Source of the DNA: Rebecca billardiae RCC1528
Taxonomy: Eukaryota; Protista; Haptophyta
DNA: 64,000 bases
Direction of reading: 5' to 3'
NCBI GenBank assembly: GCA_965240325.2
Contig: OZ251223.1
Location: forward strand, 1,054,001-1,118,000
Positions within the stretch are counted from its first letter, which is position 1. Every line of letters starts with the position of its first letter. Below are positions 1-20,563 of the stretch, one piece after another. Made by a program: the position numbers and the translations under genes. The notes beneath the pieces are model-generated. The model did not search any database. It was not told the origin of the DNA and saw only the letters and a list, made by a program, of their open reading frames with translations.

Positions 1-1
1 G

Positions 2-3000
2 CCACCGCCCTCTCCGCCACCGCCGAGCTCACCGCCCAACCTGCCACCGAGCCCGCCGCCGCGCCCGCCGCCCAGCCCGCCGCCGTCACCACCGCCGAGC
101 CCACCACCGCCGCCGAGCCCACCACCGTCGCCACCACCGAGCCCGCCGCCGCGTCCGCCGCCCAGCCCGCCTCCATCACCCCCGCCGAGCCCACCACCGC
201 CGCCAAGTCCACCACCGTCACCACCACCGAGCCCGCCACCGAGCCCGCCGCCGTCACCCCCGCCGAGCCCACCACCGCCGCTGCCACTGCCACCGTCACC
301 ACCGCCGAGCCCGCCGCCGTCACCACCGCCGAGCCCGCCTCTGGTCGCGCAGTCTCTCTTGGAGCTGGACGGCGGCGGCTGGCAGCTCGTGCGCCGCATC
401 GCGCCGAGCGCGGGCACGTGGCATCCTGCGACGGACAGCCTCGCGGGCACCGACGTGTACGGCACGCCCGGTGGCGCAACGGCCAACGTGACCTTCTCGA
501 TCGCCTTCCCTCCGTCCAACGAGTTCCTCTTCGCGACTGGCGACGGCACCAAGTGGGTCATCTGCACGCGCAACGCGGCGATCGGCGACAACTACGAGAA
601 CGAGCTGAGGCCCGTCCTGCTCGCGTCGAGCGGCGTCACACAGGCCCGGTGGTACAACCGTGCGGGCAATCTGGAGGACCCGTGGATCTCGACGACCGAT
701 CTTGCAGATGCTGCGCCCGCCGCGGGCATACTGTACGGCGAGAACGCCTTCACGCAGTATATGCTCGCGCTGACGCAGAACAACGGCGCCAACGTGTACG
801 TGCGCTTCCGCCCGGCCGAGGTGCTCGATGGCGGCGGCTGGCAGCTCGTGCGCCGCGTCGCGCCGAGCGCGGGAACGTGGCATCCTGCGACGGACAGCCT
901 CGCGGGCACCGACGTGTACGGCACGCCCGGTGGCGCAACGGCCAACGTGACCTTCTCGATCGCCTTCCCTCCGTCCAACGAGTTCCTCTTCGCGACGGGC
1001 GACGGCACCAAGTGGGTCATCTGCACGCGCAACGCGGCGATCGGCGACAACTACGAGAACGAGCTGAGGCCCGTCCTGCTCGCGTCGAGCGGCGTCACAC
1101 AGGCCCGGTGGTACAACCGTGCGGGCTATCCGGAGGACCCGTGGATCTCGACCGTGGATCACTTGGTGGTTTCATCCCCTACCAGTGTGCTGCAGCGCAT
1201 GCTATATGGCGAGAATTCCGTCAGCGTTTATCACATGACATCGCTGAATGGGGCGAACGGCGCCAACGTGTACGTGCGCTTCCGAGCATCCCCGTCACCA
1301 CCGCCCTCGCCGCCGCCCAGCCCGCCACCGCCGCCCTCACCACCGCCATCTCCACCACCCTCGCCGCCGCCATCACCGCCACCCTCGCCGCCACCGAGCC
1401 CGCCACCGCCCTCACCACCGCCATCGTCGCCGCCAAGTCCACCACCATCGCCGCCACCGAGTCCACCGCCGTCACCTCCGCCGTCACCACCACCGAGCCC
1501 ACCACCGTCGCCACCTCCGCCACCGTCACCACCGCCGCGCCCACCTCCGAGCCCACCACCGCCACCGAGCCCACCACCGTCGCCGCCTCCGCCACCGTCA
1601 CCACCGCCGAGCCCACCTCCGAGCCCACCACCGCCGCCGAGCCCACCACCGTCGCCGCCTCCGCCACCGTCACCACCGCCGAGCCAGCCGCCCAGCCCGC
1701 CGCCGAGCCCACCACCGCCACCAAGCCCACCACTGTCGCCACCACCGAGCTCGCCGCCGAGCCCGCCGCCCAGCCCGCCACCGTCACCACCACCGAGTCC
1801 ACCACCGCCGCCAAGTCCACCACCGTCACCACCACCGAGCCCGCCGCCGAGCCCGCCGCCACCGCCGTGCCAGGCTGTTTCCGGCTCGGTGGTGTACGCT
1901 GGCTCGTGCTACGTGTATGTCAGCGGCACCGCTACGTGGCAGGGCGCCCGCAACGCGTGCATGTCCCTGATGCAAGATGGGGACCTGGTCAAGGTGGAGG
2001 GCGGCGCCGAGAACACGTGGCTGTGGAGCAATTTCGGCCAGATCTGGCTCGGCGCGTCCGACCTCACGTCCGAGGGCACATGGTTGTGGGCGCGGGACGG
2101 CTCGGCCGTTTCGTACTACACCAACTGGCAACACGGAGAGCCGAGCAACTCAGGCGGCGTTGAGCACTGCGCTGCAATGTGGAGAGATTGGAATGGCGGC
2201 AAGCTTTGGTACGACGCTTCTTGTGCCTTGGTCTTTCCCTACGTGTGCGAGTCACCGGTACCGCCGAGCCCGCCGCCGAGCCCGCCACCGCCGCCAAGCC
2301 CACCACCGTCACCACCACCGAGCCCGCCGCCGCGCCCACCGCCCAGCCCACCACCGTCGTCCCCGCCGAGACCGCCGCCGCGCCCGCCGCCCAGCCCGCC
2401 GCCGTCCCCCCTGCCGAGCCCGCCACCGTCGCCGCCTCCGCCACCATCACCACCGCCGAGCCCGCCGCCGAGCCCGCCGCCCAGCCCGCCACCGCCACCG
2501 AGCCCACCACCGTCATCGCCACCGAGCCCGCCGCCGCGCCCGCCGCCCAGCCCACCACCGTCACCACCACCGAGTCCACCACCGCAGCCGAGCCCCCCAC
2601 CGTCGCCACCACCGAGCCCGCCGCCGCGCCCGCCGCCCAGCCCACCACCGTCATCCCCGCCGAGCCCGCCGCCGCGCCCGCCGCCCAGCCCGCCACCGTC
2701 ACCCCCGCCGAGCCCGCCACCGTCGCCGCCTCCGCCACCGTCACCACCGCCGAGTCCACCGCCGAGCCCGCCGCCGAGCCCGCCGCCGAGCCCACCACCG
2801 CCACCGAGCCCACCACCGTCACCACCACCGAGCCCGCCACCGAGCCCGCCGCCCAGCCCGCCACCATCACCCCCGCCGAGCCCGCCGCCGCGCCCGCCGC
2901 CCAGCCCGCCACCGTCATCCCCGCCGAGCCCGCCACCGTCGCCGCCTCTGCCACCGTCACCACCGCCAAGCCCGCCGCCGAGCCCGCCGCCGAGCCCGCC

Positions 3001-6000
3001 ACCGCCACCGAGCCCACCACCGTCACCACCACCGAGCCCACCGCCGAGCCCGCCCCCGAGCCCGCCACCGCCGCCAAGCCCACCACCGTCACCACCACCG
3101 AGCCCGCCGCCGAGCCCGCCGCCCAGCCCGCCGCCCAGCTCACCACCGTCGCCACCCCCACCACCGTCACCACCGCCGAGACCGCCGCCGAGCCCGCCAC
3201 CCAGCCCGCCGCCGTCACCACCACCGAGTCCACCACCGCCGCCAAGTCCACCACCGTCACCACCACCGAGCCCGCCGCCGAGCCCGCCGCCGTCACCCCC
3301 GCCGAGCCCACCACCGTCGCCGCCTCCGCCACCGTCACCACCGCCGAGCCCGCCGCCCAGCCCGCCGCCCAGCCCGCCACCGCCACCGAGCCCACCACCG
3401 TCACCACCACCGAGCCCACCGCCGAGCCCGCCCCCGAGCCCGCCACCGCCACCAAGCCCACCACCGTCACCACCACCGAGCCCGCCGCCGAGCCCGCCGC
3501 CGAGCCCGCCGCCCAGCTCACCACCGTCGCCGCCCCCACCACCGTCACCACCGCCGAGCCCGCCGCCGAGCCCACCGCCCAGCCCGCCGCCGTCACCACC
3601 ACCGAGTTCACCACCGCCGCCAAGTCCACCACCGTCACCACCACCGAGCCCGCCGCCGAGCCCGCCGCCGTCACCCCCGCCGAGCCCACCACCGTCGCCG
3701 CCTCCGCCACCGGCACCACCGCCGAGCCCGCCGCCGAGCCCGCCGCCGAGCCCGCCACCGCCACCGAGCCCACCACCGTCACCACCACCGAGCCCGCCGC
3801 CGAGCCCGCCGCCCAGCCCGCCACCGTCACCACCACCGAGTCCACCACCGCCGCCAAGTCCACCACCGTCACCACCACCGAGCCCGCCGCCGAGCCCGCC
3901 GCCGTCACCACCACCGAGCCCACCACCGTCGCCGCCTCCGCCACCGGCACCACCACCGAGCCCGCCGCCGAGCCCGCCGCCGAGCCCGCTACCGCCACCG
4001 AGCCCACCACCGTCACCACCACCGAGCCCGCCGCCGAGCCTGCCGCCGTCACCACCACCGAGCCCACCACCGTCGCCGCCTCCGCCACCGGCACCACCGC
4101 CGAGCCCGCCGCCGAGCCCGCCGCCGAGCCCGCCACCGCCACCGAGCCCGCCACCGTCACCACCACCGAGCCCGCCGCCGAGCCCGCCGCCCAGCCCGCC
4201 GCCGTCACCCCCGCCGAGCCCGCCACCGTGGCCGCCTCCGCCACCGTCACCACCGCCGAGCCCGCCGCCGAGCCCGCCGCCGAGCCCGCCACCGCCACCG
4301 AGCCCACCACCGTCACCACCACCGAGCCCGCCACCGAGCCCGCCGCCGTAACCTCCGCCGAGCCCACCACCGTCGCCGAGCCCGCCACCGTCACCACCGC
4401 CGAGCCCGCCGCCGAGCCCGCCGCCCAGCCCGCCGCCGTCACCCCCGCCGAGTCCACCACCGCCGCCATGTCCACCACCGTCACCACCACCGAGCCCGCC
4501 GCCGAGCCCGCCGCCGTCACCACCACCGAGCCCACCACCGTCGCCGCCTCCGCCACCGTCACCACCGCCGAGCCCACCACCGAGCCCGCCGCCCAGCCCG
4601 CCACCGCCACCGAGCCCGCCACCGTCACCACCGCCGAGCCCGCCGCCGAGCCCGCCGCCGCGCCCGCCACCGCCACCGAGCCCACCACCGTCACCACCAC
4701 CGAGCCCGCCACCGAGCCCGCCGACCAGCCCACCACCGTCACCACCACCGAGTCCACCACCGCTGCCGAGCCCACCACCGTCACCACCACCGAGCCCGCC
4801 ACCGAGCCCGCCGCCGTCACCCCCGCCGAGCCCACCACCGTCGCCGAGCCCGCCACCGTCACCACCGCCGAGCCCGCCGCCGAGCCCGCCGCCCAGCCCG
4901 CCGCCGTCACCCCCGCCGAGTCCACCACCGCCGCCATGTCCACCACCGTCACCACCACCGAGCCCGCCGCCGAGCCCGCCGCCGTCACCACCACCGAGCC
5001 CACCACCGTCGCCGCCTCCGCCACCGTCACCACCGCCGAGCCCACCACCGAGCCCGCCGCCCAGCCCGCCACCGCCACCGAGCCCGCCACCGTCACCACC
5101 GCCGAGCCCGCCGCCGAGCCCGCCGCCGCGCCCGCCACCGCCACCGAGCCCACCACCGTCACCACCACCGAGCCCGCCACCGAGCCCGCCGACCAGCCCA
5201 CCACCGTCACCACCACCGAGTCCACCACCGCTGCCGAGCCCCCCACCGTCGCCACCACCGAGCCCGCCACCGAGCCCGCCGCCCAGCCTGCCGCCGTCAC
5301 CACCACCGAGCCCACCACCGTCGCCACCTCCGCCACCGTCACCACCGCCGAGCCCACCACCGAGCCCGCCGCCGCGCCCACCGCCCAGCCCTCCACCGTC
5401 ATCCCCGCCGAGCCCGCCACCGTCGCCGCCTCCGCCACCGTCACCACCGTCGAGCCCGCCGCCGAGCCCGCCGCCGAGCCCGCCACCGCCACCGAGCCCA
5501 CCACCGTCACCACCACCGAGCCCGCCGCCGCGCCCGCCGCCCAGCCCGCCGCCAAGCCCACCACCTTCGCCCCCGCCTAGTCCGCCGCCCAGCCCGCCGC
5601 CCAGCCCGCCGCCGTCACCTCCGCTGCCGCCACCACCGAGCCCGCCGCCGAGCCCGCCTCCCAGCCCGCCTCCCAACCCGCCACCGAGCCCGCCGCCCAA
5701 CCCGCCGCCAAGCCCACCACCTTCGCCCCCGCCCAGCCCGCCGCCCAGCCCGCCGCCCAGCCCGCCGCCGTCACCTCCGCTGCCTCCACCACCGAGCCCG
5801 CCACCGAGCCCGCCACCCAACCCGCCGCCGAGCCCGCCGCCAAGCCTGCCGCCAAGCCCGCCGCCAAGCCCACCACCTTCGCCCCCGCCCAGCCCGCCGC
5901 CCAGCCCGCCGCCCAGCCCGCCGCCGTCACCTCCGCTGCCGCCACCACCGAGCCCGCCACCGAGCCCGCCGCCGAGCCCTCCACCTTCGCCACCGCCGAC

Positions 6001-15682: not shown

Positions 15683-16453
15683 ATAACTACACTGTCGTTA
15701 CGACGAAGAGGCGCGGAACATAGTCATCGTCGTCAGAATCATCAGCATCGTAGTATATAGAGACATATATATATGTCTCTATCAGTATAGTGAGTATATC
15801 CTCATCTCAGAGACATGCATCAGACATCTCCGATGTCGATGACCATTACCAATATCCGCGAACTAGTAGTTAGCTGATGATGCAGCGTGTCTGTCTGAGT
15901 CTGCGTGACGGCCCGTCGGCCCGCCTGGCAGGCAGACGGTGGCAGCGGCGTGCATGCAGCAATGTTAGTGATGGTCAGTCAGCCTGATGAGCCTGATGTC
16001 AGGCCGCCCGAATCTAATTCGCGAGCGCAGTCTTAGTAGCACCAGGTGCAGTCAGTGAGTGAGTCGGCGAGCCAACGAGCCCGCGAGCACGCGCGCAGCC
16101 GGCTGTCTGGCGCGAGTCCGCGGACATCACCGCCCGCGGGCGCGCTGCCCGCGGCGGCCGGCCGGCCGGCAGCGGACGCGCCTGCGGACTCGCTGCGGAT
16201 TCTGACTCTCATGCTCTGCTGATCCGCGCGCGTATAACGCGGTCGTGAAGCCGCTACTGGCACTGCTATGACGACTGACTGCGCGCTGCTATAGCTACTC
16301 GATCAGATATACCGATGATATACGGCCTCACAACGCCCGTCGGGAGTCGGTGCCCCGCGGCTCACTTTATCAGGCAGGCTAGGCAGCAGCGTGAGTCGCC
16401 TAGCTGGCACGCAGGCAGACACACTGACTGGCAGACGATGACAACGGGTAGCA

Positions 16454-16454
<1 letters not shown>

Positions 16455-16498
<44 letters not shown>

Positions 16499-16550
16499 CA
16501 TATATATACATATATATATCGAAGCGATTTAATATATATATATATACATA
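16455..16550. repeat. (TA)n/(TACATA)n microsatellite
   Basis: Seen directly. Confidence 0.95.
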
Positions 16551-16889: not shown

Positions 16890-17573
16890 TTACTCATTAC
16901 TCGGACCGATCGATGGCGGGGGTGGCAGAGAGTCGCCGTCAAAGCTGCGTGTCGCCCACTTGGCCGAGGATGCAACAACGCGCATGTTGGGAACATCATT
17001 GGCATCCACCCGGGCGAGCGTTCTCTCAAGGCTCCATCCCCACGCACACGCATTGCGCCGCGCGACGCGTTCGCGGGCCACCCCCTCGGGCATGGACACA
17101 AACCAAGTTTCGTCAAAAAGGCTGCGCGCCTCGTTCCAGGGCGGCTCGTCGAGGAGGAGGTAATTGCCTTCGACCAAGACGACGCGGTGCGAGCGTTCGA
17201 GCCGTATGTCGTCCTCCACCGGATCGCCAACGGCGTGGTCAAAGCTGGGCCACAAGCCTTCGCCCGCCGTGTGCAGCTCGCGCAGCTTGTCGCGGAACTT
17301 TGTGCCGTCGAAGGTGAACGGGGCGCCGCGGCGCGCGTGCGCTTCTGCAGGGTCTGCAAGCTGGTCAAGCTCCTCACGGTACAGATGGAAGCCGTCCATG
17401 GGCAAGACAACCGCGTCATCAGCGATTTGCTGCGCAATCGCATGCGAAAGCGTGGACTTGCCCGCGCCTGGACCGCCAGCGATCCCCACCCAGTACTGCC
17501 GCCCGGTCGCGGCCGACCTAGCTCGTAGGCTCTCAGCCAGCTGTTGGTAGAAAGCATCCGCACCACCACTCAT
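16890..17573 (-). CDS. P-loop kinase, YggC/YFH7 (pantothenate/uridine kinase-like) family
   Basis: VGIAGGPGAGKST, LPMDGFH, RRGAPFTFD, PSFDHAVGDP, VLVEGNYLL. Start placed at ATG 17573. Confidence 0.9.
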   Translation of the reverse strand: MSGGADAFYQQLAESLRARSAATGRQYWVGIAGGPGAGKSTLSHAIAQQIADDAVVLPMDGFHLYREELDQLADPAEAHARRGAPFTFDGTKFRDKLRELHTAGEGLWPSFDHAVGDPVEDDIRLERSHRVVLVEGNYLLLDEPPWNEARSLFDETWFVSMPEGVARERVARRNACAWGWSLERTLARVDANDVPNMRVVASSAKWATRSFDGDSLPPPPSIGPSNE

Positions 17574-17840
17574 CACGAGGGTCACAAACAACTGGGCTTG
17601 CGCGCGCCGTCGTCGCGTGGACGCAGCCGAGCTCGCATGAAGACCGTACGACGTACAGTTTACTATATGATTTAACGTGCACACTAAACGACGACTACGA
17701 AGCAATTCATATCGCAATTTATTCGCATACAGTAGTATTTCGTGTAATGCCATCACAGGAGTATCTTCGAGGGTTCCTTCTCGACGAGCGCAAGCGGGAA
17801 GCACGCGGCCACGCGCGCGACGCTCACTCGAGAGCCCGGC

Positions 17841-20563
17841 ATGAGCGCGCACGAGGCGGGCTGGGCCCTCGGTGCGCACGTCGCGGCGCGGCGCCAAGGC
17901 CCCACGACACGCCGCCCGCCCGCCGCCGTCGTGCTCTTCCTCCTCCTCCGCGCGGCGCGGCCGGCCGCCGCCAAGCTGGTGATCGAATCGGGACCAGCGC
18001 CGCTGCGTGGCACCGAGCTGCTCGCCGCGCCGTTTGCGTTCACGCCCGCCGCGTTCGCCGACGTGCGTGCGCGGCTGGTGCTCACGCATCCGGACGAGTG
18101 GGCCGACGCGTCGTGCCCGCCCAAGTACGTCGGCCCCCACTCACTCCGCGGCGCCATCGTCGTGAGCCTCGACCCGAGCCGCAGCGCGTGCTCGTTGGAG
18201 TCGCACGCGCGCTGCGCGGGCGCGGCAGGTGCGGTGGGCTGGGTACTCTTGCGATCGCTCGCCTTTCCCTTGCACCCCGTGCCGGGCTGGGCGTACAATG
18301 CGTGGTGGCCTGGCGACGAGCGCCACCTGCCCGAAACGCCCGCCGCGGACATCACGCAGCGCGCGGCCGCGCCGCTCCTCAAGGCGCTCCGTGCGGGCGA
18401 GGCGGTGCGCGCGCGGCTCACACGCTCGGAGACGGAGTGGGCGAACGTCGGGCGCACGCCCGCCTGGATCACGCGTGACGTCGTGCTCGGCTTCCAGTCC
18501 CTCGCCGTCGCCGAGCTCGCGGTGACGCGGCTGCGCGCTTTCGTGCGCGCGGACGGTAAGCTGTCGCCCGGCATCGCGCAGGCGGTGCTGCTACTGGAGG
18601 TGTTCGTGCAGCTGGTGCGGCTGGTCAGTAGGTGCACGACGCGGGGCGAGCTGCCGTTCCCGGCGGTCTTGTTCCTGATGTCGCTGCACCTCTCGATCGG
18701 CACCATCTCCAGCATGCTCTTCCTGCTCTACTGGGCGCAGGCGGCTTGGCCATCCGCAGGCGTGGTGGGCACGACACCCGTTGCCTCGCCAACGCTGGCG
18801 CACAGCCCGCGCGCGCGGAGGAGGCTGCTCGCGCTGGTGGTCACGATCGCGCTGTTCGACGTGGGCGTGGGGCTCAGCTTCGTCATCACCGTGCCCATCC
18901 TCATGGTGGTCTGGCTGCTCATCTTCGCGGGCCTGCTGCCGCTGCTAGTGCTGACGGTGTCCGCGCACACGCACTGGCGCGCCCGGCACGTGCTCAACGA
19001 GCTGCCTTCAGGCGTGGCGCGCAGGCTGACGCGCACGATGGCGTGCAGCAACGGCGCGTCGGCGCTCGCGTTAGTGCTGAGCGGGAGCTTCCCCTTCGTG
19101 CAAGTGCGCCCGTGGCCCCTCTACGCGGTCGGCTTTGTCTTCCTCTCTGCGCTCAACGTGGCCTCGGCCATGCACGCCGCCGCGTTCGCGCCGCTGGGCG
19201 TGCCGTTGATGTGCGGGCCGATCGAGCGCGCGTCGGCGGCGGTGCTGTCAGGCTTGGCGATGCCACGCCTGGCGCGCGCGCTGGGCTTTGGCGGGCGCGG
19301 CACCGTCGCCCCGCGGCAGCACGAGGTCTCCCACCTGCCCATCGCGCAGAACGCAGCCAGCCCTGAGGCGGGCCCGCCACGTCAGCGCTCCGAGGCTCCG
19401 GCGGCGAACGCGGGTGGCGGCGACGGTGTGCTCGTCCCACCCCCTTTGGGGCCGCATACCATCTTCAGATCTCACCAACGCGCGCAGTTCGAGGCGGGGT
19501 TCCGAGCGCGCGAGCACCTGCTGCTCGGCGTCCAGCTTGGCTACGTGCGCGAGATGCAGCGCGCGCTGAACGTCGGGTCGAGTGTGTCGTCGTTCGAAGT
19601 GGGGCTGCGAGCAAGGCGGCTCAGCCTGGCGCTTGCGCACCGGTCCAGGCTGGGGGTCGGTGGTGGCGGCGAGCCGTGCTCGCTCGCCGAGATAGTCGCC
19701 GGGCAGCACACGCCCGACGGCAGCCCCGCCGTCGGCCGCGCAAACCTCTTCGTCTCGCACGCGCAGCGCTGCCCATTCGACGCCACCCTCTCCGCAGTCG
19801 AGGCGTATGCGAGGCTGCACGGCCTCAAGCCGAGCGAGACATACATCTGTGCGCGCGGCGCGAAGCGCGAGCACCCGACGGCCGCGTGTGTGCACCGCGA
19901 GGGCTTGCTTGCTGCGTGCTTGGGAGTGCCTCGGCGGTTGCTCCCGCACCCTGCCCTCACATTCCCCGACCCTACCTCAACACTCCGCTCCCCCACCAGG
20001 GATCGACGTGCTGTGCATCCGGCAGGCGGTCGTGCGCACAGAGGTGCGGTACATCGGCGAGATTCAGCGCGCGGCGGGGCGTGTGGTGCTCGTCCTCCAG
20101 CCGTGGACGGCGCCCGTCTGCCTCACGCGCGCATGGTGTCTCTGTGCGCGCGCGACGTGCGCGAGCGACGTTCGCGCCACGCACGCCTGCCTGCGCTTGC
20201 GCTCGCGCGCTCACCTTGCACGCGCATCGCCCATTCCCCGCCTGGCCGGCACGCGCGTGCTTCGCAGACGAGGTGCTTGTGGCGAGGCGGCTCGGGCTGC
20301 CCATCGGCCTTGCGCTGCCCACGGAGGAGCTGCGCTCCGTCGCCTCGGCCCTCGCGGGCGACCGCGCGTCACTCGAACTCGCGCTCTCGCAGTTCGACGT
20401 GCGCCAATCGATCTCGAGCGTGGAGGAGGACAGGGCGATCATCTTCAGCATGATCGAGCAGCTGTTTGACGACGCGGAGACAGCCCCCGAAGCGTTCAAC
20501 CGCGAGACGCACGCCGCGCTGCGCGAGGGTCTGGCTGCCTTCTCGTGGTCGGCCGTTGTGTAG
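17841..20563 (+). CDS. Putative receptor: signal peptide + PA-like domain + 7 TM + C-terminal TIR/HET-like domain. Exons 17841-19848, 20000-20143, 20268-20563.
   Basis: GT-AG introns 19849-19999 and 20144-20267 restore FVSHA...YIWIDVLCI.Q...VVLVLQPW..P.CLTRAWCLYE...FDV...EDRAII. Seven hydrophobic segments at ~18460-19200. PA-like AGAAGAVGWV and PAADI...LLKAL..GEAV. Confidence 0.8.

Follow-up and report, generated by a model that had tools for sequence, protein, structure and literature searches.

A candidate membrane receptor of the haptophyte Rebecca billardiae with a PA ectodomain, a seven-helix core of GPCR fold and a TIR/HET-like tail

Description

Toll-like receptors (TLRs) and interleukin-1 (IL-1) receptors are membrane receptors in which an outer ligand-binding part, made of leucine-rich repeats (LRR) or immunoglobulin (Ig) domains, is joined by a single membrane pass to a cytosolic TIR-type domain that acts as the first signalling element, and all characterised membrane receptors with TIR-type tails are, to our knowledge, single-pass. 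Receptors with the fold of G-protein-coupled receptors (GPCRs) that have been characterised signal via G proteins or arrestins, and the plant AtRGS1-type proteins are an example of a seven-transmembrane (7TM) core that carries its own cytosolic signalling domain, in that case an RGS domain. ZNRF3 and RNF43 (PA-TM-RING proteins) and VSR1 follow a plan of outer PA domain, single membrane span and cytosolic effector, the last being a RING ligase or a sorting tail, and fungal HET proteins reside in the cytosol, often on their own or linked to NLRs, and are not known to be fused to 7TM receptors. Here, we describe a gene at positions 17841-20563 of a 64,000-nucleotide stretch of Rebecca billardiae RCC1528 (the window; assembly GCA_965240325.2, contig OZ251223.1, positions 1,054,001 to 1,118,000 of the forward strand), whose predicted product combines elements of all of these: a PA ectodomain as in ZNRF3, RNF43 and VSR1, a seven-helix core of GPCR fold and, where AtRGS1-type proteins have RGS, a cytosolic TIR/HET-like domain. 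A preliminary description of the window had listed a signal peptide, PA-like ectodomain, seven helices, linker and TIR/HET-like domain at this location; all of these parts are present. Searches of family libraries and the literature did not find a characterised family with this three-part design, which the preliminary description had not recognised as one either, and no relevant paper came up in literature searches for fusions of 7TM to either PA or TIR.

The gene is intact, lies on the plus strand (as do all features given for it below) and has three exons that encode a product of ~815 residues. Exon 1 (17841..19848; 669 codons and the first base of a split Trp codon, from the open reading frame (ORF) and its translation) runs from the signal peptide through the PA domain, 7TM core, linker and helical subdomain into the TIR/HET-like domain, of which it encodes the first strand and helix. 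It is followed by intron 1 (19849..19999; 151 nt, GT..AG, phase 1, with donor T/GTGCGC at 19849), exon 2 (20000..20143; (W)IDVLCIRQ...TRAWCL), intron 2 (20144..20267; 124 nt, GT..AG, phase 1) and exon 3 (20268..20563; (Y)EVLV...FSWSAVV, with a TAG stop at 20561-20563). The raw ORF at 17841-20453 reads into intron 1 and turns to Arg/Ala-rich nonsense past '...KPSETYI', and the other two frames hold 'IDVLCIRQ...TRAWCL' and 'EVLVARRL...FSWSAVV' with its stop, which the two introns link to the frame of exon 1. The codons split by the introns give W (T/GG; WID motif) and Y (T/AC; WCLYE motif), matching the residues that intronless paralogues have there ('FVWLDV' and 'WCL[YF]E'), and the C-terminal 'SW' motif of exon 3 is also found in intronless paralogues. 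A profile of the C-terminal domain aligns to the window piecewise, in three successive segments (profile positions 7-106, 108-182 and 165-256).

The assembly scanned comprises 72 Mb in 41 contigs, and a query with exon 1 gave 77 matches at ~55-57 loci on most contigs of the genome. Family size is given here as at least 55 paralogous loci with the same order of parts, and the gene is therefore not a chance ORF. In the four closest paralogues (L002, L003, L004 and L006; ~51-58% identity to the window over exon 1), intron 2 is kept in position and phase in all four (119-136 nt) and intron 1 in L002, L004 and L006 (151-398 nt), with the acceptor alone read in L003. In L002 (3472-3714) and L004, both introns are stop-free and of a length divisible by three; their retention would add residues, not truncate the protein. 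Three further paralogues, L021 (860 aa), L023 (840 aa) and L015, carry every part, in order, within one continuous frame, and protein P0001 (817 aa, called on short Logan contigs) looks identical to L015 by eye. These intronless full-length paralogues remove, for the family, the objection that two separate genes had been joined, and bear out the earlier reading of one gene. They also served as proxies for the whole tail domain, as the three exons of the window were searched separately.

An artefact or pseudogene, in which a GC-rich ORF and unrelated downstream frames give the appearance of a fusion by read-through, is a reading that these data have already largely refuted and that we hold to be wrong with near certainty. 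Spurious long ORFs are typical of GC-rich genomes (the GC content of the window is 0.55-0.81), the raw ORF does run through intron 1 into Arg/Ala-rich nonsense, and the gene's transcript was not found in protein collections. These points are met by canonical splice sites whose position and phase are kept in the closest paralogues while intron lengths differ, by splicing that yields exactly the invariant residues W and Y/F, by intronless paralogues with the same parts in one frame, by confident structure models and by purifying selection in older paralogue pairs. Those older pairs (L024/L025 and L022/L029) show omega of 0.2-0.7 in the domains and ~1 in the linker, and young pairs (dS ~0.1) show omega of 0.5 in PA and 0.8-1.8 in the 7TM core and tail start; all are Nei-Gojobori estimates from a genome with extreme codon bias and are indicative only. 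Mean identity among paralogues is highest at the start of the tail domain (0.48), followed by PA (0.42), 7TM (0.30) and the linker (0.20). Together, these rates would fit, as an indication from sequence, a maintained function with fast turnover after duplication. On its own, the gene in the window is unremarkable within a large family, and the interest lies with the family as a whole.

N-terminus and PA ectodomain

The N-terminal region (17972 being its last base, from 17841; residues 1-44) is signal-peptide-like by hydropathy, with a hydrophobic stretch at residues 28-44 (h-region ~28-38) that precedes the conserved 'LVIxSGP' start, and cleavage is likely to occur before KLVIESGP. The AlphaFold2 (AF2) model has a helix of low predicted local distance difference test score (pLDDT) at 28-37, and paralogues have canonical, cleaner signal peptides at the same aligned position. 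The PA stretch that follows (17973..18440; residues ~45-200) was recognised by Foldseek and by Pfam PA matches in homologues, and most of its 10-residue blocks have mean pLDDT of 87-98. Its best Foldseek matches are PA domains, namely those of aminopeptidase 2ek8, ZNRF3, RNF43 and VSR1 (E 1.2e-4 to 5e-3, TMt 0.5-0.66, ~170 aligned columns), and ZNRF3, RNF43 and VSR1 also have this fold in the same place, right after the signal peptide. Against the Pfam PA family (PF02225; gathering score 23.9 bits), the window scores below threshold (13.9 bits, E=0.059), as do paralogue L002 (20.6 bits, 4.9e-4) and the Diacronema lutheri protein P0041 (20.3 bits), and two homologues found with the family profile pass it (P0141 at 41.1 bits, 2e-10, and P0101 at 32.8 bits, 7.5e-8). 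The PA fold of the predicted ectodomain, which would be secreted or luminal, is thus established at the level of modelled structure, in agreement with the preliminary description, which had recognised it from short motifs.

The structural matches to VSR1 and ZNRF3/RNF43, together with a PA domain that is conserved and not diversified among paralogues, favour an endomembrane cargo or quality-control receptor, in which PA would bind the C-termini of luminal proteins, as it does in plant vacuolar sorting receptors and PA-TM-RING ligases, and the cytosolic domain would govern sorting or turnover instead of immune signalling. An expansion to ~55 fast-evolving copies is unusual for sorting receptors, however, TIR/HET-like domains have no known sorting role, and the 7TM fold matches signalling receptors only, so that we consider such a cargo receptor very improbable.

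Seven-helix membrane core

The 7TM core (18459..19184; residues 207-448, TM1-TM7) was delimited from the helices of the AF2 model, which was built on 19 paralogues and has a mean pLDDT of 76.9. The seven helices, at 207-238, 245-265, 273-302, 323-349, 352-387, 390-420 and 424-448, are 21-36 residues long. A hand count of Lys and Arg in the loops, from the helix and loop sequences, gives 13 inside and 4 outside; with the signal peptide and PA domain ahead of TM1, this agrees with a predicted topology of N-out, C-in, in which the odd number of helices places the tail in the cytosol. Both the odd count and the inward-facing tail had been anticipated.

Realignment of the Foldseek list with VIA-align gave Z of 18-19.9 to class A GPCRs (root-mean-square deviation 3.2-3.9 A over 230-255 residues), with Smoothened and Frizzled ranking close behind, and in a structural search of 48,161 chains that was independent of Foldseek all of the top 50 matches are GPCRs (Z 16.5-19.6), where the tool advises caution for helical bundles at Z ~13. 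The bundle therefore superposes on class A and F GPCRs (Z 16.5-19.9), and the GPCR-like structure suggested earlier holds in both searches. Unlike those receptors, the algal core belongs to no Pfam GPCR family (no match at E<=1 for the window exons or full-length paralogues) and lacks DRY, CWxP and NPxxY: TM3 ends in LLYWAQAAW, TM6 is without CWxP and TM7 without NPxxY. A profile search against PDB sequences returned noise only (aquaporin Z at E=0.09). As modelled, the core is a GPCR fold that lies outside every known GPCR sequence family. A signal-peptide-peptidase-like protein (PA plus presenilin-type core) was also considered and rejected, as there are seven helices and not nine, GxGD is missing and the fold matches exclusively GPCRs.

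A GPCR-fold core might also be expected of a conventional G-protein- or arrestin-coupled receptor, whose C-terminal domain would merely modulate trafficking or desensitisation. As in ordinary GPCRs, the C-terminal ends of homologues without the TIR/HET-like domain, from amoebozoans and metagenomes, are short and Ser/Thr-rich, and RGS domains and a single possible G-alpha locus are present in the genome. This locus passes the cut-off only with neighbouring matches summed, however, and most G-alpha matches span profile positions ~168-262 only. The missing DRY, CWxP and NPxxY motifs and Pfam GPCR matches also count against coupling of this kind, and a modulator would hardly be expected to take the form of a ~260-residue tail domain, strongly conserved and kept in 55 or more paralogues. 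We therefore rate a conventional receptor as improbable.

TIR/HET-like tail

After TM7, a membrane-proximal helix (residues ~460-471) and a disordered cytosolic linker (residues 485-556) occupy 19185..19508; pLDDT is below 50 over 485-558, and the linker is poorly conserved. A conserved helical subdomain (HLLLGV...SLAE; 19509..19736; residues 557-632) was defined from paralogue alignments and is helical in a model of the tail of intronless paralogue L021 (model residues 1-75), outside the range that aligns to TIRs. The TIR/HET-like domain itself (19737..20563) is spread over exons 1-3 and has its motifs in the order FVSH, W-I-D-x5-Q, QPW and R-A-W-C-L-Y-E, with FVSH at 19749-19760, W-I-D at T19848 plus GG20000-20001 and then 20002-20007, and the Glu codon of R-A-W-C-L-Y-E at 20270-20272, the first full codon of exon 3. 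Seven residues (W, D, P, R, W, C and E) are invariant in a 35-sequence alignment and all are found in the window; the Glu of W-x3-E (R-x-W-C-L-x-E) is present in 35/35 sequences.

The L021 tail model is of high confidence (pLDDT 95.2, predicted template-modelling score (pTM) 0.92) and shows a flavodoxin-like alternation of strands and helices, in which the invariant Glu falls in alphaC, the helix that follows strand three. Compared with the same 48,161 chains, the tail matches SARM1 (Z 7.2), RPP1 (6.9), SpbK (6.4), RPS4 (6.3), MyD88 (6.3) and MAL (6.1); ranks 1-5 and 7 are TIRs, all aligned to model residues 76-262, and from rank 8 nucleoside 2-deoxyribosyltransferases and ThsB are mixed with more TIRs. 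The modelled tail fold resembles that of enzymatic TIRs (SARM1, plant TNL, and bacterial ThsB and SpbK), with SARM1 and RPP1 as the best fold matches, and matches of the TLR/IL-1 type include the TIRs of MyD88, MAL, IL-18Rbeta and Hydra TRR-2. Foldseek also returns TIRs repeatedly for the tail, none of them significant (all E >0.04). A catalytic Glu at the start of alphaC, in a W-x3-E context, is found in SARM1 and plant TIRs.

HET domains have three conserved blocks that are shared with TIR up to alphaC (betaA, betaB and alphaC), and HET-like domains occur in Haptophyceae (Dyrka et al., 2014; PMC4986451). The algal motifs FVSH, W-[IL]-D-x5-Q and R-x-W-C-L-x-E occur in order and on the secondary-structure elements expected for these HET blocks, and the tail shares with fungal HET domains and enzymatic TIRs a pattern in which a strand that ends in S-H or S-Y is followed first by W-I/L-D...Q and next by R-x-W-x-L-x-E. 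The HET-type motifs and extra N-terminal helical subdomain set its tail apart from the TIRs of TLR/IL-1 receptors, which, unlike the algal tail, are recognised by Pfam.

Several results weigh against a TIR/HET effector in this protein. The structural Z of 5-7.2 for the tail is in the range that the tool calls 'middling'. With Pfam, no TIR family (PF01582, PF13676 and relatives) matches the window exons or full-length paralogues at E<=1, and a genome-wide scan with the TIR_2 hidden Markov model (HMM) matches 24 other loci, none of them of this family; an hhalign comparison of the tail with the genome's own TIR_2 domains gave 10.8% probability over 35 columns, which is not usable as evidence, although betaA and betaB are in register. 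For HET (PF06985; gathering score 22.5 bits), the best score is 16.8 bits, below the cut-off, and 5/35 members match at E 0.009-0.1; the best match covers the W-I-D...Q block only, neither the window exons nor L021 give a HET match, and nothing is over the cut-off in a genome-wide HET scan. Searches of the window exons and full-length paralogues with NCBIfam and PADLOC gave nothing, and Pfam gave a weak PA match alone. It is by motif and secondary-structure position that the invariant Glu might correspond to the catalytic Glu of TIR NADases. The PA domain is not hypervariable and is better conserved than the 7TM core (mean identity 0.42 compared with 0.30), unlike what would be expected of a diversifying ligand-binding surface. 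Finally, no transcript of this gene is among the retrieved proteins, all of which are <=35% identical.

On balance, the tail is best named 'TIR/HET-like', a name supported by the modelled fold and by motifs, with formal membership of either Pfam family not reached. The preliminary description had called the tail a TIR enzyme; this is a candidate reading, as the threshold of a TIR or HET sequence model was never reached and the fold match is modest (Z up to 7.2).

Possible mechanism

The anatomy, topology and family structure of the receptor are shown by computation, and a mechanism can be proposed from them. The protein would be a surface or endomembrane sensor, in which ligand binding at the PA domain, or ligand-driven clustering, would be relayed through the 7TM core and bring cytosolic TIR/HET-like domains together. 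Like TIR and HET domains in other systems, these would act as a built-in effector: they would self-associate and then engage in NAD+-consuming or nucleotide-signal chemistry, regulated cell death or both. A role in non-self, pathogen or virus sensing, or in allorecognition, seems likely because the family expansion is lineage-specific. In the haptophyte Gephyrocapsa huxleyi, TIR proteins whose N-terminal regions are extracellular or span the membrane several times are expressed in phases of virus infection (PMC12489294). The best explanation of the whole, a PA-7TM sensor with a TIR/HET-like built-in effector whose tail was added to an older module, has in our judgement about an even chance of being correct. 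Peptide sensing by the PA domain, as suggested in the preliminary description, may be part of it by analogy with other PA domains. A more specific proposal is tentative and rather doubtful: that the receptor signals independently of G proteins by assembling its own TIR/HET-type NAD+-cleaving or death domain, and that the ~55 copies form an immunity or allorecognition repertoire of pavlovophytes, the effector having been added to an ancient PA-7TM family also present in amoebozoans.

The tail could instead be a non-enzymatic adaptor that recruits TIR/HET-like proteins homotypically, as the TIRs of animal TLR/IL-1 receptors do, with the HET-like membrane protein encoded next door as one candidate partner. 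An adaptor role for HET was proposed by Dyrka et al. from its similarity to TIR (PMC4986451), many further copies of the tail domain are at loci without a detected PA-7TM part, the genome also has canonical TIR_2 domains, and the second HET-like membrane gene is in tandem (20864 to ~22900). An invariant Glu of W-x3-E with flanking R, W and C in 35/35 sequences would suit an active site over a pure interface, however, and the best fold match is the enzymatic TIR of SARM1, yet the adaptor TIRs MyD88 and MAL score almost equally. We regard an adaptor as unlikely compared with a built-in effector.

Relatives and wider distribution

A full HMMER scan with the paralogue profile found 939 proteins at E<=1e-3 and 80 at E<=1e-30. 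A word-indexed protein search with exon 1 gave 0 matches, because Ala-rich words probably swamped the candidates, and ESM Atlas gave low-score leads only (0.88-0.90), to eukaryotic hypothetical proteins. The only named relatives are uncharacterised proteins of Diacronema lutheri, a pavlovophyte haptophyte (KAG8460825.1 and KAG8471001.1/2), of which KAG8471001.1 is named a HET domain-containing protein in UniRef. The UniRef label 'RGS domain-containing' on P0016 (D. lutheri KAG8460825.1, a full-length homologue) was not reproduced, as Pfam detects no RGS in it at E<=0.01.

Many relatives of 420-600 aa consist of signal peptide, PA and 7TM only, with Ser/Thr-rich ends; examples of these tail-less proteins come from transcriptomes of Nolandella and Vermamoeba, both amoebozoans. 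The PA-7TM module of amoebozoan and environmental proteins is homologous to that of the alga (profile E 1e-15 to 1e-24) and shares NPW before TM1, IAQ..L..E in TM2, DP in the first outer loop and Q..F.P after TM7, but the amoebozoan proteins, themselves unstudied, end soon after TM7 in a Ser/Thr-rich stretch without a TIR/HET-like domain. The tail therefore looks like an added effector. A more distant and less GC-rich group from environmental assemblies (P0074, P0079 and P0081) has PA-7TM with a 'FVSHWW...FLDVFSLNQ' variant of the tail. Within the R. billardiae genome, the tail profile also matches loci where the exon 1 query aligned via its C-terminal part only, and the tail domain may sit in other architectures too. 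The simplest reading is that an older PA-7TM receptor family gained a mobile TIR/HET-like effector.

Neighbouring genes and other observations

The next gene downstream (20864 to ~22900, plus strand) encodes a different membrane protein with about four hydrophobic helices and without PA. Exon 1 of this gene closes with 'RIDAFVSHRY', and 'TIWIDRLCIDE...YTRRLWW' follows in a second frame, which makes up a more HET-like variant of the tail; two HET/TIR-like membrane genes are therefore in tandem here. The product of a divergent gene upstream, at ~16890-17600 (minus strand), is a P-loop kinase of phosphoribulokinase/uridine-kinase type (Pfam PRK E=4.6e-5), with further P-loop matches to MeaB and zeta-toxin. 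The long ORF of this gene reaches into the start of the receptor gene by a spurious 5' extension only. A (TA)n-type microsatellite at ~16450-16520, visible as a run in the ORF translation, lies in an AT-richer spacer upstream of the kinase gene. Positions 1-6000 differ from the remainder of the window in their very high GC (0.72-0.81), strongly negative GC skew (-0.25 to -0.47) and positive AT skew. Elsewhere in the genome, arrays of RGS matches at ~1.9-kb spacing (G000:C3:3527936-3545083 and G000:C8:1519727-1592133, both minus strand) lie in giant frames of 8,009-13,615 aa and may encode very large multi-RGS repeat proteins.

Significance

As a confirmed observation, the receptor design is a variant of known receptor kinds; the preliminary description was right on the architecture, and the function that it proposed is a candidate one. 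By fusing a 7TM receptor to a TIR/HET-like module, this design would connect two major signalling systems, and it would supply a testable receptor repertoire for microalgae, in which antiviral and non-self sensing is almost unknown. The tail would offer a tractable non-fungal branch for asking what HET-type domains do, and the PA-7TM module that the alga has in common with amoebozoans would point to an unrecognised, widespread GPCR-like family.

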